A stretch of DNA of 63,718 nucleotides, counting the filler, from Choristocarpus tenellus KU-1152 (Eukaryota; Protista; Phaeophyceae): assembly GCA_964200185.2 (NCBI GenBank). It is 8 parts of 8 records of this genome, joined end to end, with 100 filler letters (N's around TTAATTAATTAA, not from the genome) between each part and the next. Parts side by side here need not be neighbours in the genome. Positions count along the whole stretch, not along the records: positions 56,646 to 60,870 come from CAXNAD020015601.1; 7 more parts are not named here. One strand, given 5' to 3'. Below are positions 2,527-60,870 of the stretch, piece after piece (the first letter of the stretch is position 1; each line of letters opens with the position of its first letter). Position numbers and translations under genes: made by a program. The notes beneath the pieces were generated by a model. It was not told the origin of the DNA. It searched no databases and saw only the letters and a list, made by a program, of their open reading frames with translations.

Positions 2527-5500
2527 ATGGGATCATGTGAGGATTCTGACCAGCTTCAAGTACTTAATCATGTGAGTAATAAATTGCTCAACGAGCTGAG
2601 GGACATATTCTAGAATAGAGATGTAACAATTTCCCTACAGTGTAGCTTGAAAGGCTTATGTTTGGCATTTCATTGCGTTCGTTGCCTTAATATGCCACGA
2701 TATGCCAGGATGATGTGTTGTGTCGGTTGCGGGCTGCTCTTCCCCCGGAGAACGAGAAATGGTGGGCGTTTTACAGCTCAGTCTACAACGGCGTTGTGAC
2801 AGACCCTACCCTCATGTTGTTGCCAATAGACGACCATATGGTGCATCGAGGGCATGCAGGTGAGTTGGTTAGCAACTTCAATGCATGTGTTATGGCACCA
2901 TTGGGGTTCCTTCATGCATTTCACTTGCCGAGATGAACCTTTGCGAGGAGTTGATTCTCTTTCCAATATGTCTGCTTGCCGTTGTTATAAGTGAACATGC
3001 TATAGCCGCTCTTAGAGGAATGCTGAATGTTCAATACGTATTTTTTGTCCAGATTAATACCCACTCGCTGCATGGTGGTATATATCTTGTTGGTATATTC
3101 TTGTCCCTTACACAGAGCATTGGGATGGCTTGCAACTATACACCCTTTCTAAAACGAACCCGAAGCTCTGCAAACATGCTTCGAGAACATAGCATAGTGG
3201 CCTTGGGATATTTATGTATATATATATTATGTATCGTAGGGTCAGTGCCATGTCTTTAAGTTGACAGTGGCTAAGAAGGTGGTCAGACAGAACAACTAGG
3301 CATCACTTGTAAAAAAGAGTACAGTAAGACGGGGGTGACTTTTCATGTGAAGCAAATAATTTGCAACCCAGCAAACACCAGTGTACATTAATCTCCTACA
3401 CCCATATACTTACTACTTCATACTTTCGTGCCAACGTCAGTTTTCGACACTTGCAATGTCAAGAATGGTCGTGCCTACGGTCTTGACTTCCATCTCGATC
3501 GATTCCTCAGAAGTGCCACTGCGGCACGGATCAAACACACCTACACCAAGGAGAAGCTACGATCGATCATAATTGGAACTATTGCTGCTGGAGGGCGAAG
3601 ACTCAAGGGGCAGTCCTTTGTTCGCTACTGGCTGAGCGCTGGAAGGTCAAGAGTTTGCCTCTAACCAGTTGCTGATGTATCTTCATGCCTGTGCTAGAAC
3701 TGATTTTGATGAGTGGTTGGGGCTTTGGAGGGGAAGTGTTTCTCCAGAAGTTGGTTCTTCATGCAGGTCTGCGCTAGAGCTACTTCGAGAAAGTTTCCAC
3801 AGAAATAGTTGACCCAACTGTGTGCGCTTTTGAAAGCTTGGGAATGGACTGCCGCCATTGTATTCTCAGCACGTTTATCCAATCCAGCTGCAAATTGTCA
3901 TGCATAGTGCACTAAACAACGTGTCCTATTTTACCTAGTGCAATCGAGAGTTAGGATGAGAAACGATCGGATCGTATGGTCTCTGTGAAAAAGGTGGTTG
4001 TACATATCGAAGCAAATATTGTACCTCATATATCCAAGCCCGTGCCGGTGTGGATAAGACTGGATGCTGTGCTTGGCTGTGGCATTTCTTACTCTTACAC
4101 ACAGAATTTTCCATGCACTGGATCTTCTGGAATGATGGTGGTGGTTGTGGTGGGGGATCAATGTTCTTGCTCGCCGTATATATAGCTTGGTGATTTTCAT
4201 TTTTGCTCCCTTTTTTTTTTTTGCAATCACTATTCCCTCTCGATCGCAATCTGTCAAAGAAGATCAACCTCCGCCTTCAAGATCCAAATTACCAGATACA
4301 CTGCATATCCTTTTTTCGTGCTTCTTGTAAAAGAGGAGACTTTGGTATACTACCTTGCGAGGATGGAGGCGGAGCAAACTTGTACGTTGTGGTGCATGAC
4401 TTTGGCGTTGGCCATACCTGTGAACCTGCAAAAGAACATATTGTTGATGTCCCCATGAAGCCCAAGCTCCTGGCTTCTATGAAGTCCAACAACTACCTTC
4501 TCAATGCACTCACTGCCATGACATCACAGGTCACAGTCTGAGCTGGTGTGGGGTGAAGGTGTTGCTGTGTGTGCAGGTGTTTCTTTTTATTGAGAATGTG
4601 TGTGGAGGGTATTTAGCTTGGGCCGTCTGCCCTGTTGCTACAGCTGTAGAGGGATGGAAGGAAACACTCGTGACCTCCGTGCAATCAATTTATATTTATT
4701 TGTGTTGCATTTAAGTTTGAAGATTTTTCGCTGACACCCTCTTCTACGTTCGTGAACTTTGTTGCCTTCTCAAATGCTTGCCTCCCCTACCCCCTTTTCC
4801 TGAGTCGGAAGGAGATTGTTGTCAGACGGTTAGGTGCCACCAAATTGCTAGAGCTCCACTGACTCGTTGTTCGTTTTTGGGGTGCTGAAGTAGTAAGTGG
4901 TACAATATTGAGTCAAGGGGTTCCCTGTCAATATGTTGATCATATTTAGTGGTCCATGAATTTGACAAGGGCATACCAAGTCATTTGATGAGTAGAAGAG
5001 ATGGCGGTGCATTCTTATTAACTAGATATATCCCAAGCCTTACCATCTTGCACTACCTCACTCAGTACTTCTGTTACCCACCCCTTACCTCATCCTCCTT
5101 TGACCCCACTGATCCTTTTCAGGATAAAGGAGGGTCATATGGTATACAGGTTGACTCAGAGGGCAATGTTGGTGAGACATGCACAGGCAATGTGGTCATA
5201 GTGGACAAAGCTGGAGTGCTTCGGACTCCAACATTTGATGGGACGATCCTTCCGGGAACAACATTACAGCGGGCATTTGCCCTGGCTCCTAAGCTTGTGG
5301 AGGTGATGTTCTGGTGGTTCAAAACATTTCAAATCCTTCAAAGCATAGGATCATGTTATTTGACACCTCAAATGTGAGTGAGGCCTGACCTCCTTCTGTC
5401 ACCTTTATGAGGTACAAGTGCCATGTATATTTCACACTTTCGGCAGCATCCGTTCTTCACATGGAAAACCCAAACATGTAAGGGAGTCTAACCTACATTT

Positions 5501-7273: not shown

Positions 7274-10200
7274 TCACCACTCAAGTCGAGGAATAGTCCA
7301 TGTTGGGGTTACACCCTCCTTTCTAAAAACCTCACAAAGGGCATGAGTTGAAATTGAAAAGGGAGATGTTCCTTTTGCAGCATCAACCCCAAGCTCCTTG
7401 CCATGGATACCACCAGCCACAAAAAGTGAGTCCACCCCTGATGTCTCTGCTCCAACAATGTCATGAGCCAAGCTGTCACCCACCTGAGAAGCAGTTGTGT
7501 AGCAAGGGGACCACACAAGCATGCGAGTATGTGGGAGGTAAAGGAAAGAGGGCAGGATGGGGAGTACACCCGAAGGTAGCTCTCAATCCATTACACCATG
7601 ATTGCACACATTAGGTATGATGTACTCCTAAACACTATGCATATCAAATGTGAAGCTTGAAGCAGGGGTCTGATGCAGGGAAAACCATGTTTCATGTATG
7701 GGCACTGTGCAAAGAGATGTGGAGGTCCCCACCTAGGTTCTTTCAAGTACAGAAATGAAAGCCCACAGATCGTTAATCCTGCGCTATCATACACATTCAT
7801 TGGTGTGTTCTATGCAGGTAGTGCATAAATACCACGAGAAATTGTGTACTAAACACGCAGTTTTCCCATCACGCTACCTCAATAACGCATCATGTCACTG
7901 AGAGAAGTAACAGGAATATGAATGTCAGTGCATGGATTGTGTGCATGATCAACCCCTTTCCCCTTACAGAATAAATGATGGTAGCATTGTTATTGGCATT
8001 CAAAATAAAGAGTGAAGGAGGGACACACTACCCACATGTACTATCCTCTCCTTGGGCAGTGCCATCTTGTCCACGGCTGCTTGATAGTGCTCCTACACAT
8101 GGAGTCACAAAGGATAGGAATTTGTACCGCAAGGCAATCCCGGTATGGGGGGCAAAACGTATTTTCAGTTTCAGGGTTAGGATTAGGTTCAGGGTGTTCT
8201 ATGTCAGTAAGGAGGAGGGGTTGAAGAACGAGGGGAGGCAAACTGACTCAGACAGAGAGGGTGAGTGAGGCCTACAACAAACAAAATATGTAGGGGAAAG
8301 AAGTAGGCTGCATACCTCTTGTACAGGACGCTAGGAAAGGGGATGAGGCACCTGGCTATTTAAGTCAGTATAATGGATCAAATAGAGTACCTCACTTGTT
8401 TTGCAAAGCAGCCCACAGCCTGGGTGTGCACAACGCAGTGACTTTCTGCTCTTGGTGTCAGCTTTGCGAGGTAAGATGGTTACACACAAACACACACAGC
8501 CTGGCATTTGCTTTCCAAAGTTCTCCAGGCCTGTAATACCATAAACAAATATTTGACCACTTGCCGGACAAAATTTAAAAGACCCACCCAATCGAACCAC
8601 ATGAATGCAGCTAATGTTGTGATAGTTCATTATCCCCTAAATTGATGTATAGCTCACCACGTAAGGTTTCCCGAAAAAGCGAACTTCGCCACCCATGGCT
8701 TTGTACCTCATTGCTAGTAACCCTGGCATGTACCAAAGACCCCCTTCTGGACTGTTCACGGTTATGTCCGGGTTGACATTGATCATCGGCAGCCCACGCT
8801 CAATACCCACCTATGTTCAGAGGCACAGAAAGGGAAAAGGGAGAAGCCCACTGCATCAAGTACCTACAAATATTGCTCAGTAGGCACTGTTGAATGTACA
8901 CAGCAATCACAGGGGTACTGCAAATAGAATGCAGAAATCTCCACTGAGTGCATGAGATTCTCATTATCAATACAAGTGAAGAGGCTGTGATTTTTAGTTA
9001 TCACTACGCACAAAATACCAAAGAGCAAGCACTCTTGTACTTTGTGGGGTAAGATCACATGATCTGACAAAGGAGATATATTCGTATCCAATATTATGCA
9101 AGGTCGACAAGAAATGAGCAACTAACATTCCTTTCTTACTCACAGCACCTTGAAAACCTCTTCATAAGTATCTACTTCTCCTGAATTCCTCATCCCAGTC
9201 TTTTTGGTACCATTGTCATCCACAATTGTGTCAGGACCATGGCAAAGTAGGAAGTCCGCCTCGCTGGGAGAACTGTAGTCAAGACCCAGGGCCTAATTTC
9301 CAAGAAATGGGCAACATTGAGACAAGGTAAGGGGCAGGTCAAACAGAGTCAGAGAAAGCAAGACATACATGAAGAGGATCTAGTTTCACACGGTCTTCTC
9401 ATAAACCGGTTGAATCCACCTCTATCCCAGGAGTTCAGAGTCAACTGGCTTGAAAAAGCAATACGATGTGAATATAGAGGATCTCCACCAATCTCTGTGG
9501 GATGCACTTTGAGGAATGGAACAGGGAAATAAAATACTAATGTAGATCCTCCAACCTACTGAAAAGTGCACAAACTCAAAGATATTAATAGAAATTATTG
9601 TCAGAATAACTAGTAATTCTGCAACAGGTATACTTCAAGAAACAGGAGGTATAAACATTGATGTAGTACGGTACCACATGAGATTGATATCAATGTTGCA
9701 ACTCACCCAAAGCACATAAAAGGCACGTGAAATTGTCCTGCAGGTACCCACCTCTAAAAATCCATCTGAGTCAGCTCCATTCCATCCCAGTAGGACTGTT
9801 TTTTTCCCAGCCAGGTCATTCTTCATCATATACTGAAAGCCCTCCTGGGTTAGGGGAAGGACACAGATGCAGAGTTGCGTGATCAGCCGATGTTAACAGC
9901 TGTAGAGTCTCAACTAGTGAACCGGCAGTCTGATCCTTTGAAAATAGAATTAAGAGATAAAGATGAATTGTGAGAGCTTAACATATTCATATAGACCAAA
10001 CCCCACATATTCATTTGAGTACTTGAGATGCATCAGTCTCCAGTGTCGAGTTTAGGTCGATGTTGCGGTTGTATGCTTACGCACCGAGGAGGATGCAGTC
10101 ACCCCAGCACAACTCCCAACACCATATATCACTCCAATAACCAACCACCCATGCCACCCCCAAGGCTGACCTCGCCAGAAGTAACACCTCCCTCGAACAT

Positions 10201-56645: not shown

Positions 56646-57551
56646 GTCTCGCTTCGGAGCCATGTCCTTATCTTTGTTCGTGCCGTTCCTGTTGTAGTAG
56701 CGCACGTATGTATATAAATGGATGGGAGTTGTGTTGGAGGTGGATACAAGGGACGGGGGATGGAATCCTAGAGGAATCGTATGCCAGCGGCGGATCTCTA
56801 ATTATGTAGGTATTTACGCGTGGTAAATGCTGCAGCAGCGCAGGGATGGCCGGATGAGATGATATTGTTGAAGCATAAATAAACATACCACACGTGTATA
56901 TACACATATATGTAACACATAACTCCACACTGGAGGGATCTCTAACTTCTTACATCACACATCTAGGCGTGGTAACTGCAAAGTGAATGTGGCGAGTACG
57001 GTCGGATTACATTGTTCTGAGATAGGACTACTGTTCAATCATCAAGCAGGGGAAAAAATATACCGGGTACAAATAACACTGTGTACATATATCAAACCCA
57101 CCTCTCCACGCCGGAGGATGCTCTTGCATTAGGTGTACCTTTGCAAGCGTCGATGACATGATTGGATATTCCGAACGATGCCTTGAAAAACTGCGTACAA
57201 ACNNNNNNNNNNTCTCAACTTAATGACAGGTACACGGTCACCAATGAAGTGCTTGCGATCGCGGCGGTTCTCACATGCCCGGATGATGTCCTACTCTTTG
57301 GCCAACGTGAGTGCAAGGAAGGACTCGCTATCTGCGGCGAACTTCTTCACACGGGCTAAGCGCTTGCAGCAGTCACCCTGTTTGTTGACCGGAATGGGTT
57401 GAGCCCATCCTTGGCGAAGCTTGGCGCCGGTCGCTGAAGCGTCATTGGTAGAAAGCTCCAGCGCATCATTGTTGACGGGCTGGTGAGGGGGCAACACAGG
57501 GGGCGACGCAGGCGACAAAAGCCACCCACTTGCTGTGGAAGCAACTGTCAT
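56646..57551 (-). pseudogene. 5' part of a putative Sola-like transposase; exons 57551-57102, 56688-<56646
   Basis: MTVAST..GDCCKRL..KE*DII..VCTQFFKASFGISN..VER|NGTNKDK. The CC and VCxxFFxxxFGIS motifs resemble the N-terminal region of Sola-type transposases. One in-frame TAG; the catalytic part would lie beyond the linker. Confidence 0.6.
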
Positions 57552-57633
57552 GGTGTTTTCGGGCAACAGATGGTCTTGGGCAGTGAGAAGGTGTAGGAGT
57601 GATGAGATTCAAAGCCGAGCATATGAACGATGT

Positions 57634-58450
57634 TTGAGCTCCAGGCGAACTGTCGGACCACCCTGAGATCCATGATCCGGAAAAAACGTGTATTAGGGTT
57701 TTCGGAAGTTGTAAACCCGATTAAATCCGTACTTACAATATTCTAAAATACAAAGCACATACTAAATTGATCTTGTACGTTTCCAATGTTCCGAAACCAA
57801 AAGGTAAAAAAAAAACTGACACCCTCTAATTGTTTACAGTACAAAATCTTAAATTGTTGGACATTTGTATTCATAAAAATACTAGAGACGACAAAAAGCG
57901 GCTCTTGAGTTTCGGGTGATCCGACGGATCACCCGAAACCATTGAAGACCCAAAACAGGTGCATTAGGACTTTTAGAAATAGTAAATCCTATTATAACCG
58001 TTCTTACAATTTTAGAAAATACAAAGCACGTACTTCATAGGTCTCACACGTTTCCAATGTTAAGAAACTAAAAGGTCACTTTCAACTGGACCCTACAATT
58101 TATTTAAATACTATAACCGCTTTTTGTCGACTTTAGGATTCATAAAGTACTAGAGTCGACAAAAAGCGGCTCTTGAGTGTCGGGTGATCCATCGGATCAC
58201 CCTAAACCATTGAAGATCCCAAACACGTGCGTTAGGGTTTTTACGAAATAATAATAATATTCTAATCTTTATATCAACAAATAAAAATACAAACCACATA
58301 CTTCATTGATCTAATACGCTTGAAACGTACGAAACCAAAAGGTCACAAAAAACTGATACTCTCTATCGCTTTTCAATATGAAAGCGTGTGCTGTTCGATA
58401 TTCGTATTTTTTATAAAACAATTATCAACGGAAAGAGAAATCTGAGTTAT
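57634..58450. repeat. Tandem array of three ~270-bp AT-rich units with internal palindromes
   Basis: Anchor (T/C)TGAG at 57634, 57905, 58173 and 58442 (periods 271, 268, 269). Shared blocks AAAATACAAA(G/C)CAC, GAAAC(C/T)AAAAGGT and CGACAAAAAGCGGCTCTTGAG. Confidence 0.92.
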
Positions 58451-58622
58451 GAGGACCGACCGACCAGATGAAATAAAGCAGCACCTCCCAGCCCTCAGTC
58501 CTCATTTCAATTCCTTCCCTTCCGTACATACCACCAGCACCTCTTACTTATCTATCCCCGTCACACCCTCCTAATCTTCGCCGTGTCCAACATTCACTCA
58601 ACAACAACCCACCGGCCCGCCG

Positions 58623-60870
58623 ATGGCGCTGCCCACGGATCAAGAGCGTAGTACAGCAATCTGAAGGGCATGTCCTCGCTCCTAGAACATCACTACCTCG
58701 GTACGTACCAGATGAATCTCGGCAACATCACATGCACGGAGATGGTGCGTCCCCTGAGCGAGCGTGGTGTTGTGCGCATCAGCAAGTCCATCTGTGAAAA
58801 GGGCTGGCTGGAGCAGTTTGCTCCGTCTGTCGTCATCCAACGAGATTGCTTAGGCAACGGGGACCAGCTCACCGCCAAAACTGCGCTTGACATTCAAGGA
58901 AGAACACTGGACGGAAACCATAGAATAACGGTGCTGAAGAGAGTGTTTGATCCCGAACGCACTTTCATGATGCAGGTCTACATGGAGTTCAACCAAGCAG
59001 AAGAGAGGCTAATTGCCAACGGTGGGTGATGGAGTGTTGTCGTTGTTCCATGATCGCCTGATGATTCTTCTGAACTACCAAGTTGTTACCGAGTTTCCTT
59101 TGTTTGGTTCATCGTCAGTCAGCCTATTGTTGATCTTTTTTATCCCTCGTGATCTTTCTGTCAACAGCAACATGTTGCTCACTACTGCCTGCCGCATGTG
59201 TCCCTCGACCACTTCCCACCTACCAATTGCCCCGTTCGCCCACTGCACCGCCACGCTTATAGCATTCAACGATGCAACCGAGAGTGTGGTTGAGTGCACG
59301 CTGTACGATAAGGTATAAGAGCTCGAAGAAGCTATCAAGTGACAGACGAAGAAAAAAGAAGTGTCACTAGCAGAGATCCGCAAAATGTACAAAAAGGTGA
59401 GGGAGTTGTCAACGTTGGTGGGATGGTGGCGCTCTACTCCTCCTCTTGTTGGGTTACAGCTGTTGTGAAATCTCTCTGTGTCCTCCTATTCAACCTAAGT
59501 TGAGATAGTTATCCCGCGTTTAGCAACCCTGTCAACCACTTTCTTGATTCTCGGGTGACCATGTAGTATGTGTGTGTGGTTAACCACAGACGAAGTGAAC
59601 AGTTCATTCTTTCAGCAGTAGGTAGGCCAGGCCGCTGAGTATCATACCGCCTCCCCTATCCCTCCCCCGGGTAAGGTCCACTCCTTGCCTGGACCGTTGC
59701 GGTGTTGCCTGAATTAATAAACACACGATGTGTCATTTTGCGAACCAAACCCTCTCCTTCATGGGCAACCACATCCTGTGTCTGTGTTGTATACACACGA
59801 ACAATAAAAAGCATTCTTGTTTTTTCTATCGACGGTGTAGCATGAAAAACACCCCCCCCCACACACTCATACATACCCCGTTGGTGTGGTATTAACGATG
59901 CCTCATCCTGGTTGGCTGGGTGCATAATATTTTTCGTTTTCTGCCCATCGCGAAGGTGGGCGTTCCTCCCCCGCCGAAAACAACTCTACGAAACTAGCAA
60001 CAAGGCGTAAAGTCCCTTTGACCAGAGTCCTTCGAGGTATCAAAGGAAGTGTGTGAGAACTTGCCACCACAGGTCGACCGCAGCGTGGTCATACTGAGCT
60101 ATCTGAGTCGCGAGGAGTTTGCCGGCTTCACTTCTCTCAATCAGGGGCTATGCATCCGTCTGCTTGTGAGGCAAGTCAAACCGCCACCGTGTTATATCGT
60201 GTAGACAGCAGTAAGCGCAATGTGTGCCGGTCGCAGCACATTGCACAGGAACGTTCAATAAGTGTCTCCTACGATGAATAATGTAGTCGGTCATTGTTGT
60301 ATCGAACGATGAACCGTTCGTAGTGCTGTGGAAATACTACCTGCAGTGTGTGTTTCCTGTGTATGTGTGCTCTTGTCTTTTCTGAACTACGACAATCGTT
60401 CCATTAATATTTTCTGCAGTGGCGACCCTTTACTCATCATTACCTGCGCATCGTTCTCATTGATGTCCTTCATGGCAGGTACAAGTCGTTCAACGGGAAG
60501 GCTCCTACGGCGAGGGACTACAAGGAGATCGAATCGGACGCGCAAATGTCTGAGATACTTGTCTCGGGCACCAGGCAGATTGTATCCAAGGAGAAGTGGA
60601 CACCAGAGCTCCAAAGGTTGGCAAATGGTGCAGTTGCAGCGATTATCGTTTTTGCCTTTTCGTATCTCCAGTGCACCCACAAGTCGCCATGCACCCCTCA
60701 ATTGTAAAATATGCGGTCAGTGTCTTTTTCAGCACCGCACTGATTGATTGTTGCAAAACTGCTCTGCATTTGGGACGTTATGTGAATGATGCGCGGGCTG
60801 CCAGGGAAATGGACAGGCTCGTATTTGAGAAGTGCAATATGCACGAGATCTGGGTCAAGTCCCACCACGA
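58623..60870 (+). pseudogene. Spliced ParB/Sulfiredoxin-like domain plus putative HTH protein; exons 58623(58670)-59021, 59263-59396, 59956-60170, 60479-60616, 60733->60870
   Basis: VRPLSERGVVRISKSICEKGW..RTLDGNHRITVL (ParB/Srx GxHR motif)..EERLIANAFN, then VSLAEIRKMYKK|VGVPPPPKTTLRN. All five exons are phase-consistent (one GC donor at 60171). Four in-frame stops in exons 2-3 and a probable 5' frameshift. Confidence 0.75.

Follow-up and report, generated by a model that had tools for sequence, protein, structure and literature searches.

What is the divergent gene pair at positions 56646-60870 of the window, the 63,718-nucleotide stretch of Choristocarpus tenellus KU-1152 DNA (assembly GCA_964200185.2) that was analysed here? 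A reading made from the DNA alone (the sequence-only reading) had described a minus-strand gene with a CC motif and a plus-strand gene with a DGNHR motif, placed head-to-head across a palindromic repeat array. This arrangement is confirmed, with the gene starts at 57551 (minus strand) and 58670 (plus strand). With a probability of roughly 0.8, the piece comes from the middle of a brown-algal cut-and-paste DNA transposon of the Sola1 type that has decayed and that includes an accessory gene with a ParB fold. The two starts have 1119 bp between them, and both genes diverge from an AT-rich intergenic tract of ~1.1 kb (57552-58669, GC content 0.40). Both genes were searched exon by exon, and contigs from four sequencing runs of one study were placed on the piece.

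Comparison with a curated element supports the identification of the leftward gene as the N-terminal exon of a Sola1-type transposase, as the sequence-only reading had proposed. The N-terminal, Cys-rich exon 1 (57102-57551, minus strand) opens with the ATG at 57551 as MTVAST..GDCCKRLARVKKF.., with the CC motif contained within GDCCKRL, and carries the motifs CC..C..F, DRK.F, GSM.A.G.PVC, F..SFGIS, and CKGT. Of exon 2, the piece contains only the start (..NGTNKDKDMAPKRD; 56646-56688, minus strand) before its left edge. The curated element is Sola1-1_Ec32, a 21.5-kb Sola-1 transposon of Ectocarpus with a 4-bp target-site duplication (TSD) that was reported in Genome Biol in 2025 (PMC12477816), and its transposase sequence is printed in supplement file 2 of that paper (PMC12477816). 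Read by eye, the N-terminus of this transposase shares its motifs and their order with the window copy and the related loci L004 and L006 (CC..C..F, E.EQ.I, DRK.FV, VP, GSM.AAG.PVC, F...F.VS, and CKGT..A.AS), with an identity to the family estimated by eye at ~40% over ~70 residues. The Ectocarpus protein then continues as SPKRDRAIGFL, which by eye fits the exon 2 start of the window copy (..DMAPKRD). A longer relative extends the comparison. Locus L007, a long contig of assembly ERZ26962164, has a homologous exon 1 (E 8e-9) followed by further exons on the same strand, and these downstream exons match Pfam DUF7869 with E values of 5e-7 (above the curated cut-off) and 1e-3. They also share with Sola1-1_Ec32, again by eye, the segments QVDN..ENKN, GYGER..PQ.LG.G, F..C..C, and FTREE..DAF..NFK..MHHE, and parts of them are kept in the Sphacelaria locus L002. 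The assignment of the minus-strand gene to the Sola1 transposases is thus based on the motif match by eye to Sola1-1_Ec32 and on the linked gene of L007, which reaches the catalytic core.

Exon 1 of the window copy is 81-88% identical to L006 and 45-84% identical to L004 at the amino acid level. The L004 exon (P0116) is an intact open reading frame (ORF) of 166 amino acids, whose homologues are exon-sized fragments only; five further relatives were found with it as the query, and a homologue search with the broken minus-strand ORF of the window copy returned nothing. Searches of Pfam, NCBIfam, and PHROGs with every exon piece of both genes in the window gave no significant family.

The window copy of exon 1 is broken by one stop, a TAG at 57291-57293 (minus strand) where L004 and L006 encode Gln, and by an assembly gap of 10 N at 57203-57212. 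Past the gap, the minus-strand ORF resumes in another frame as VCTQFFKASFGISNHVIDACKGT.., and VCTQFFKASFGIS is present there. The sequences of L006 and L004 (contigs of 3-5 kb; L004 is from SRR25569785) are continuous in a single frame across this position, where they have 12-13 codons (..GGGSMLAAGIP), and loose ends of sibling copies behind 57202 in the sequencing runs encode GSMLAAGIP on the minus strand. Because the gap stands for ~36 real bases (12 codons, ..GGGSMLAAGIP) rather than 10, the change of frame is no frameshift but an artefact that results from a guess at the length of the gap, and the two sides of the gap form one exon. Runs X1 and X3 include contigs in which 57184 is followed, after one extra A, by 57404, so that 219 bp (57185-57403) with the gap and much of exon 1 are skipped. 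This skip, a family deletion variant that exists as DNA or RNA, is no GT..AG intron.

The rightward gene begins with an open exon of 117 codons (58670-59021, plus strand) that encodes a complete domain with a box-I-like segment (S..C..GW....APSVV) and the motif LDGNHR. An exhaustive phmmer search returned 98 homologues of this exon, the named ones being from the brown alga Sphacelaria rigidula. Across 50 aligned homologues Asp81 and Gly82 are invariant, and Leu5, Arg27, Gly33, Ser40, Gly45, Pro52, His84, Arg85, and Tyr104 are conserved in at least 90%; the domain has the conserved G-x-x-R (DGxHR) nucleotide-binding loop. Structure prediction supports a ParB/sulfiredoxin (Srx) fold for exon 1. 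The AlphaFold (AF2) model has a predicted local distance difference test score (pLDDT) of 88.7, and its best Foldseek matches, all with a probability of 1.0, are the N-domains of ParB (6sdk, 7bnk, and 7bm8), PadC, Noc, KorB, pNOB8 ParB, sulfiredoxin, SbnI, and a serine kinase, with template modelling (TM) scores of 0.5-0.6 to 6sdk, 6ryk, 7bnk, and Srx. A 301-residue Sphacelaria homologue (P0034) superimposes on bacterial ParB with a Z score of 10.7 and a root-mean-square deviation (rmsd) of 2.6 Å over 95 residues (VIA-align). In a language-model Atlas, look-alike clusters include ParB_N or DUF6551 in a minority of their members, and P0002 gives a faint match to GmrSD_N (E 0.069). Sequence searches of the PDB by phmmer and with a profile of the 50 homologues produced chance matches only (such as phycocyanin and EF-Ts, E ≥ 0.09). 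After the N-domain, the P0034 model consists of helices (residues 151-219) of low pLDDT, and exons 2-3 contain what resembles a helix-turn-helix (HTH), ..VS.A.I.KMY..VG....K.TLRNW.., as a pattern only.

Five accessory exons lie within the piece, the number given by the sequence-only reading, and two of its boundaries have been moved (exon 4 now begins at 60479 and exon 5 at 60805). All are on the plus strand. Exon 2 (AFNDATESVVE..VSLAEIRKMYKK; 59263-59396) was compared with P0002, P0007, L004, L006, L001, and L008. Exon 3 (VGVPPPPKTTLRN..GLCIRLLV; 59956-60170), which is open in L004, ends at a GC donor. Exon 4 (YKSFNGKAPTARDYKEIE..WTPELQ; 60479-60616) is delimited by spliced contigs and conserved in L004, L001, and L002, and the start of exon 5 (EMDRLVFEKCNMHEIW..; 60805-60870) is cut by the right edge.

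The window copy is dead, with at least five in-frame stops and a 9-bp deletion. In addition to the transposase TAG, exon 2 of the accessory gene has a TAA at 59316-59318, which results from the 9-bp deletion, and a TGA at 59343-59345 in place of an Arg codon of relatives; loose ends of run contigs at 59317 reveal exon 2 without the deletion. Exon 3 has a TAG at 59995-59997 (Trp, TGG, in L004) and a TGA at 60022-60024. Comparison with L004, L006, P0002, and P0007 bears out the premature stops that had been read in both genes as marks of a decayed element. The same exon 3 Trp codon is TAG in the Sphacelaria rigidula copy L001 (~5006-5008), at the point where the annotated P0007 ends, and this looks like two independent changes of one codon in different species.

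The pairing of the two genes is retained well beyond close copies. Transposase exon 1 and ParB-like exon 1 are head-to-head in seven loci including the window, with starts 0.7-1.1 kb apart, and several other contigs are too short to tell. The ParB domains of the other six loci are identical to that of the window copy at 83% (L006), 68% (L004), 44% (L008/L009), 43% (L014/L015), 33% (L007), and 30% (L002) of amino acid positions; the first of these, L006, is an 84-87% identical copy from the same assembly, GCA_964200185.2. The gene pair is therefore kept across very diverged members of a multi-copy Sola1 element, and the linked pairs in diverged loci are not what single-copy host genes separate from any transposase would give. 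Loci L003 (8648-9877) and L007 (4455-4581 and 9134-9204) of ERZ26962164 share, in introns and flanks, short stretches of 60-80% amino acid identity, which are probably another small repeat nested in the elements.

Sequencing reads show how numerous the family is. In runs X1 and X2, respectively, 6004 and 4536 contigs match the piece at 85-100% likeness, with coverage of the introns and the array as well as of both genes, which marks the unit as a high-copy dispersed repeat. The multiple copies expected of a Sola1 member are present as thousands of contigs at 85-100% likeness in the four runs, and these counts, with the stops, support a multi-copy element and agree with the dead element of the sequence-only reading. 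The sole dip in X1/X2 coverage is at 59607-59888, inside accessory intron 2, where read-contig depth falls 10- to 50-fold from a very deep level elsewhere. This segment is probably private to few copies, as an insertion or a poorly conserved part of the intron.

Contigs of run X3 are joined exactly at four introns. Transposase intron 1 (56689-57101) is of the GT..AG type on the minus strand (CT..AC on the plus strand) and is removed in four X3 contigs, which join 57102 to 56688 (joint 56687>57101, cut +1). The accessory introns are 59022-59262 (intron 1, GT..AG), 60171-60478 (GC..AG; joint 60168>60477, movable by up to 3), and 60617-60804 (GT..AG; joint 60614>60803, cut +2). The simplest reading is that members of the family are transcribed and spliced.

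In relatives, the accessory gene continues past the point at which the piece ends; it includes an acidic region rich in Gly and several more exons that are conserved (L004 3893-4818, where the contig ends; L001 6451-8089; and L007 to ~15263). When the ORFs of L001, L003, L004, and L007 were searched for an effector that follows the ParB domain, Pfam gave no match. Searches of PHROGs, NCBIfam, and the PDB with the downstream accessory exons of relatives returned nothing, exon-sized queries being a weak test, and the Atlas offered no usable match for these exons. Specifically, the downstream exons of L001, L004, and L007 gave no match to a methyltransferase or a 2-oxoglutarate (2OG) oxygenase, the queries being exon-sized fragments, with which sensitivity is limited. 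The strings ADPPM..HPKGTMVFF and VVADVFGHSTG (L001 ~7900-8089; L007 12173-13315) have a faint look of methyltransferase motifs IV and I, respectively; as profile and structure searches lend them no support, we do not claim a methyltransferase on their account. A homologue search with the downstream exons returned only unnamed proteins of brown algae, one of them from Scytosiphon promiscuus. One of these exons (L007 12698-13315) falls in a 90% cluster, P0122, that has 131 member sequences in one assembly and a relative in Scytosiphon promiscuus. From the size of the cluster and the Scytosiphon relative it follows that the accessory gene is multi-copy in other brown algae.

The space between the two genes is largely taken up by three tandem AT-rich units of ~270 bp (57605-58420), found by repeat search with a mean column identity of 80% in the alignment and self-BLAST offsets of 271 and 539. 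The units start at 57605, 57876, and 58144 (spacing 271 and 268), and the outer two are 64% and 77% identical to the middle one, unit 1 being the most decayed. Unit 2 contains a perfect 15+15 palindrome, GTTTCGGGTGATCCG-A-CGGATCACCCGAAAC (57909-57939; DNA fold -16.1 kcal/mol, z -6.4). Unit 3 has an imperfect copy (58177-58207) with a perfect 9+9 core, GGGTGATCC/GGATCACCC, and unit 1, which has no palindrome, has lost it. The description in the sequence-only reading, of three repeats with palindromes between the two genes, is confirmed. A second palindrome spans the junction of units 2 and 3 (58117-58169), with 20-nt arms (95%), a 13-nt spacer, and a DNA fold of -20.1 kcal/mol (z -7.9). Both z values compare single-strand folding with that of shuffled sequences, and the palindromes fold far better. 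At the equivalent intergenic position, L008, whose ParB domain is 44% identical, carries a 34-nt palindrome of different sequence (2823-2856) with the core GCACACGCGTGTGC, and two short matches there are spaced 268 and 272 bp, matching the period of the window array.

These features suggest a model for how the element may work. The AT-rich tract of ~1.1 kb would be a control region with divergent promoters. The leftward gene would encode an intron-containing transposase, of which the piece contains exon 1, with the Cys-rich N-terminus, and the opening codons of exon 2, and the rightward gene an accessory protein composed of a predicted ParB/Srx-fold nucleotide-binding domain (exon 1), a helical region, and a remainder encoded beyond the piece. 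The accessory protein may bind the DNA of its own element under the control of a bound nucleotide, with the palindromes of the ~270-bp repeats as candidate sites by analogy with ParB/parS and the KorB operators; that the palindromes are its binding sites is an attractive but unproven prediction. Such binding could regulate the divergent promoters or bring a C-terminal activity to the transposon.

Several observations weigh against this interpretation of the locus. The match of the transposase to Sola1-1_Ec32 was read by eye from printed text and is not a scored alignment, which is the main formal weakness, and the catalytic core, terminal inverted repeats (TIRs), and TSDs of the window copy all lie outside 56646-60870. 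Two loci with enough upstream sequence, L003 (10 kb) and L017 (2.9 kb), are without a transposase exon. Pfam (including ParB_N, PF02195), NCBIfam, and PHROGs give the ParB-like exon no match, so its assignment depends on the predicted fold and the motifs. The sequence-only reading had expected Foldseek to find a ParB/Srx fold together with an HTH, and only the fold was recovered. Rigid alignments end at P0034 residues 146-172 and the HTH is not demonstrated; the alignment of Foldseek to two-domain ParB structures covers ~260 columns, but at an rmsd of ~16 Å. That the spliced X3 contigs are RNA is an inference, because the library type of X3 is unrecorded. Finally, among the relatives compared, only L006 (period 269) clearly shares the ~270-bp array of the window, and none is present in the intergenic regions of L004, L007, L002, and L014/L015. 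Thus, of the expected recurrence of pair and array, the pair stands in seven loci and the array in two, so that conservation of the two-gene unit does not extend to the array.

This distribution lends some credit to a different, somewhat unlikely view of the array, in which the two genes are a transposon unit and the ~270-bp repeats are an unrelated insertion or local satellite of one subfamily (for example a small non-autonomous element that was later duplicated) with no role as a cis site. The two copies that have the array are 84-87% identical to each other, four more diverged loci keep the pair without it, and unit 1 has no palindrome. On the other side, the array sits exactly between both starts and belongs to the repeated unit in the reads, the L008 palindrome and its short matches 268-272 bp apart occupy the same position, and tandem inverted-repeat arrays adjoin ParB-like genes in red-algal Plavaka elements too.

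A second question concerns what the domain does. It is unlikely that the ParB/Srx domain serves as an enzyme (nuclease, kinase, or nucleotidyl-transfer) that aids transposition or counters host defence without forming a clamp, as its relatives in the DGxHR superfamily (SerK/SbnI and the ParB-like nucleases) might lead one to expect. In favour of an enzyme, DGNHR is nearer to the motifs of Srx, SerK, and the nuclease type than to the GERR found in chromosomal ParB. The fold matches also include sulfiredoxin, SbnI, and free serine kinase, and no HTH is confirmed. However, the structures ranked best are the N-domains of the CTP (cytidine triphosphate)-binding proteins ParB, Noc, and KorB, and the region after the domain is helical, with the HTH-like pattern of exons 2-3.

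Within the reading of the locus as a Sola1-type element with a DNA-binding ParB-fold protein, a more specific and doubtful proposal can be made. The protein might be a nucleotide-gated clamp on subfamily-specific palindromes that controls transposon expression, silencing, or the handling of excised DNA by means of a C-terminal part different from both the methyltransferase of Sola1-1_Ec32 and the oxygenase of the red-algal protein PAG3 (see below). The palindromes on which it loads may be GGGTGATCC..GGATCACCC in the window and the GC-rich one in the L008 subfamily. If true, this would be a eukaryotic ParB-parS-like module with a new effector.

It is highly improbable that the locus is a normal pair of host genes sharing a bidirectional promoter or part of an integrated virus of brown algae, which the lack of a visible TIR or TSD within the piece and the occurrence of ParB-like genes in large DNA viruses might suggest, given the thousands of diverged copies in the same organism with introns and intergenic array included, the spliceosomal introns, the multiple stops of the window copy, the homology of the partner gene to a curated Sola1 transposase, and the 131 member sequences of the accessory exon cluster P0122 in one assembly.

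The Sola1-type element with its ParB-fold accessory gene has two published counterparts in algae. In Ectocarpus, a ParB-like gene lies opposite the Sola1 transposase (PMC12477816). Sola1-1_Ec32 resembles the window family in being brown-algal, multi-copy, and intron-containing, and in a transposase with CC..C..F, EQ.I, DRK.FV, GSM.AAG.PVC, F..VS, and CKGT..A.AS followed by PKRD, all in the same order. The two differ in that the Ectocarpus accessory protein, of 1104 amino acids, has a DNA methyltransferase domain, whereas none was detected in relatives of the window family, and in that the window has an intergenic repeat array, of which the Ectocarpus paper makes no mention (PMC12477816). PAG3, from the red alga Bostrychia moritziana, is an accessory gene of giant Plavaka (KDZ-type) transposons that encodes a ParB-like N-terminus and a 2OG oxygenase (bioRxiv 10.1101/2025.02.11.637652). 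It shares with the window family the ParB-like N-terminal domain, the adjoining tandem inverted-repeat arrays, and a proposed binding to its own transposon, and it differs in its Plavaka/KDZ rather than Sola1 transposase, its red-algal host, and its 2OG-dependent oxygenase, which is undetected in the window family. Like these algal accessory genes, the gene described here lies beside the transposase of its element (head-to-head in seven loci), and like PAG3 it adjoins an inverted-repeat array, which is directly upstream (window and L006).

The sequence-only reading had held that Sola elements carry a transposase only and that this architecture was undescribed. That claim does not survive the two 2025 reports (PMC12477816; bioRxiv 10.1101/2025.02.11.637652), with which the two-gene architecture and its proposed logic are already published. 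New here are a decayed member from a different brown alga, evidence for an ancient pairing of the two genes in the Sola1 elements of brown algae, a repeat array that contains a perfect palindrome and belongs to a Sola1-type element, and an accessory protein in which no effector domain has so far been recognised. That algal DNA transposons carry accessory genes with a ParB fold is a very recent observation, and the present locus adds that the pair of Sola1 transposase and ParB-like gene is old and conserved over several lineages of brown algae, the ParB domains being as little as 30% identical. In at least one subfamily, a perfect 31-bp palindrome that lies between the promoters in a ~270-bp array is a clear candidate for the binding site, and intact-looking copies exist (L004 type).

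By way of comparison with bacteria, the accessory domain is only 10-16% identical to ParB proteins, has no Pfam ParB_N match, and carries DGNHR instead of GERR; there is no ParA-like partner here, and the setting is eukaryotic, spliced, and transposon-borne. What it has in common with ParB, Noc, and KorB is the predicted fold of the N-domain (Z ~10, rmsd ~2.5 Å), the box-I-like segment, and the G..R motif, together with palindromic repeats beside the gene that recall parS, NBS, and OB, KorB having a similar role at divergent promoters.

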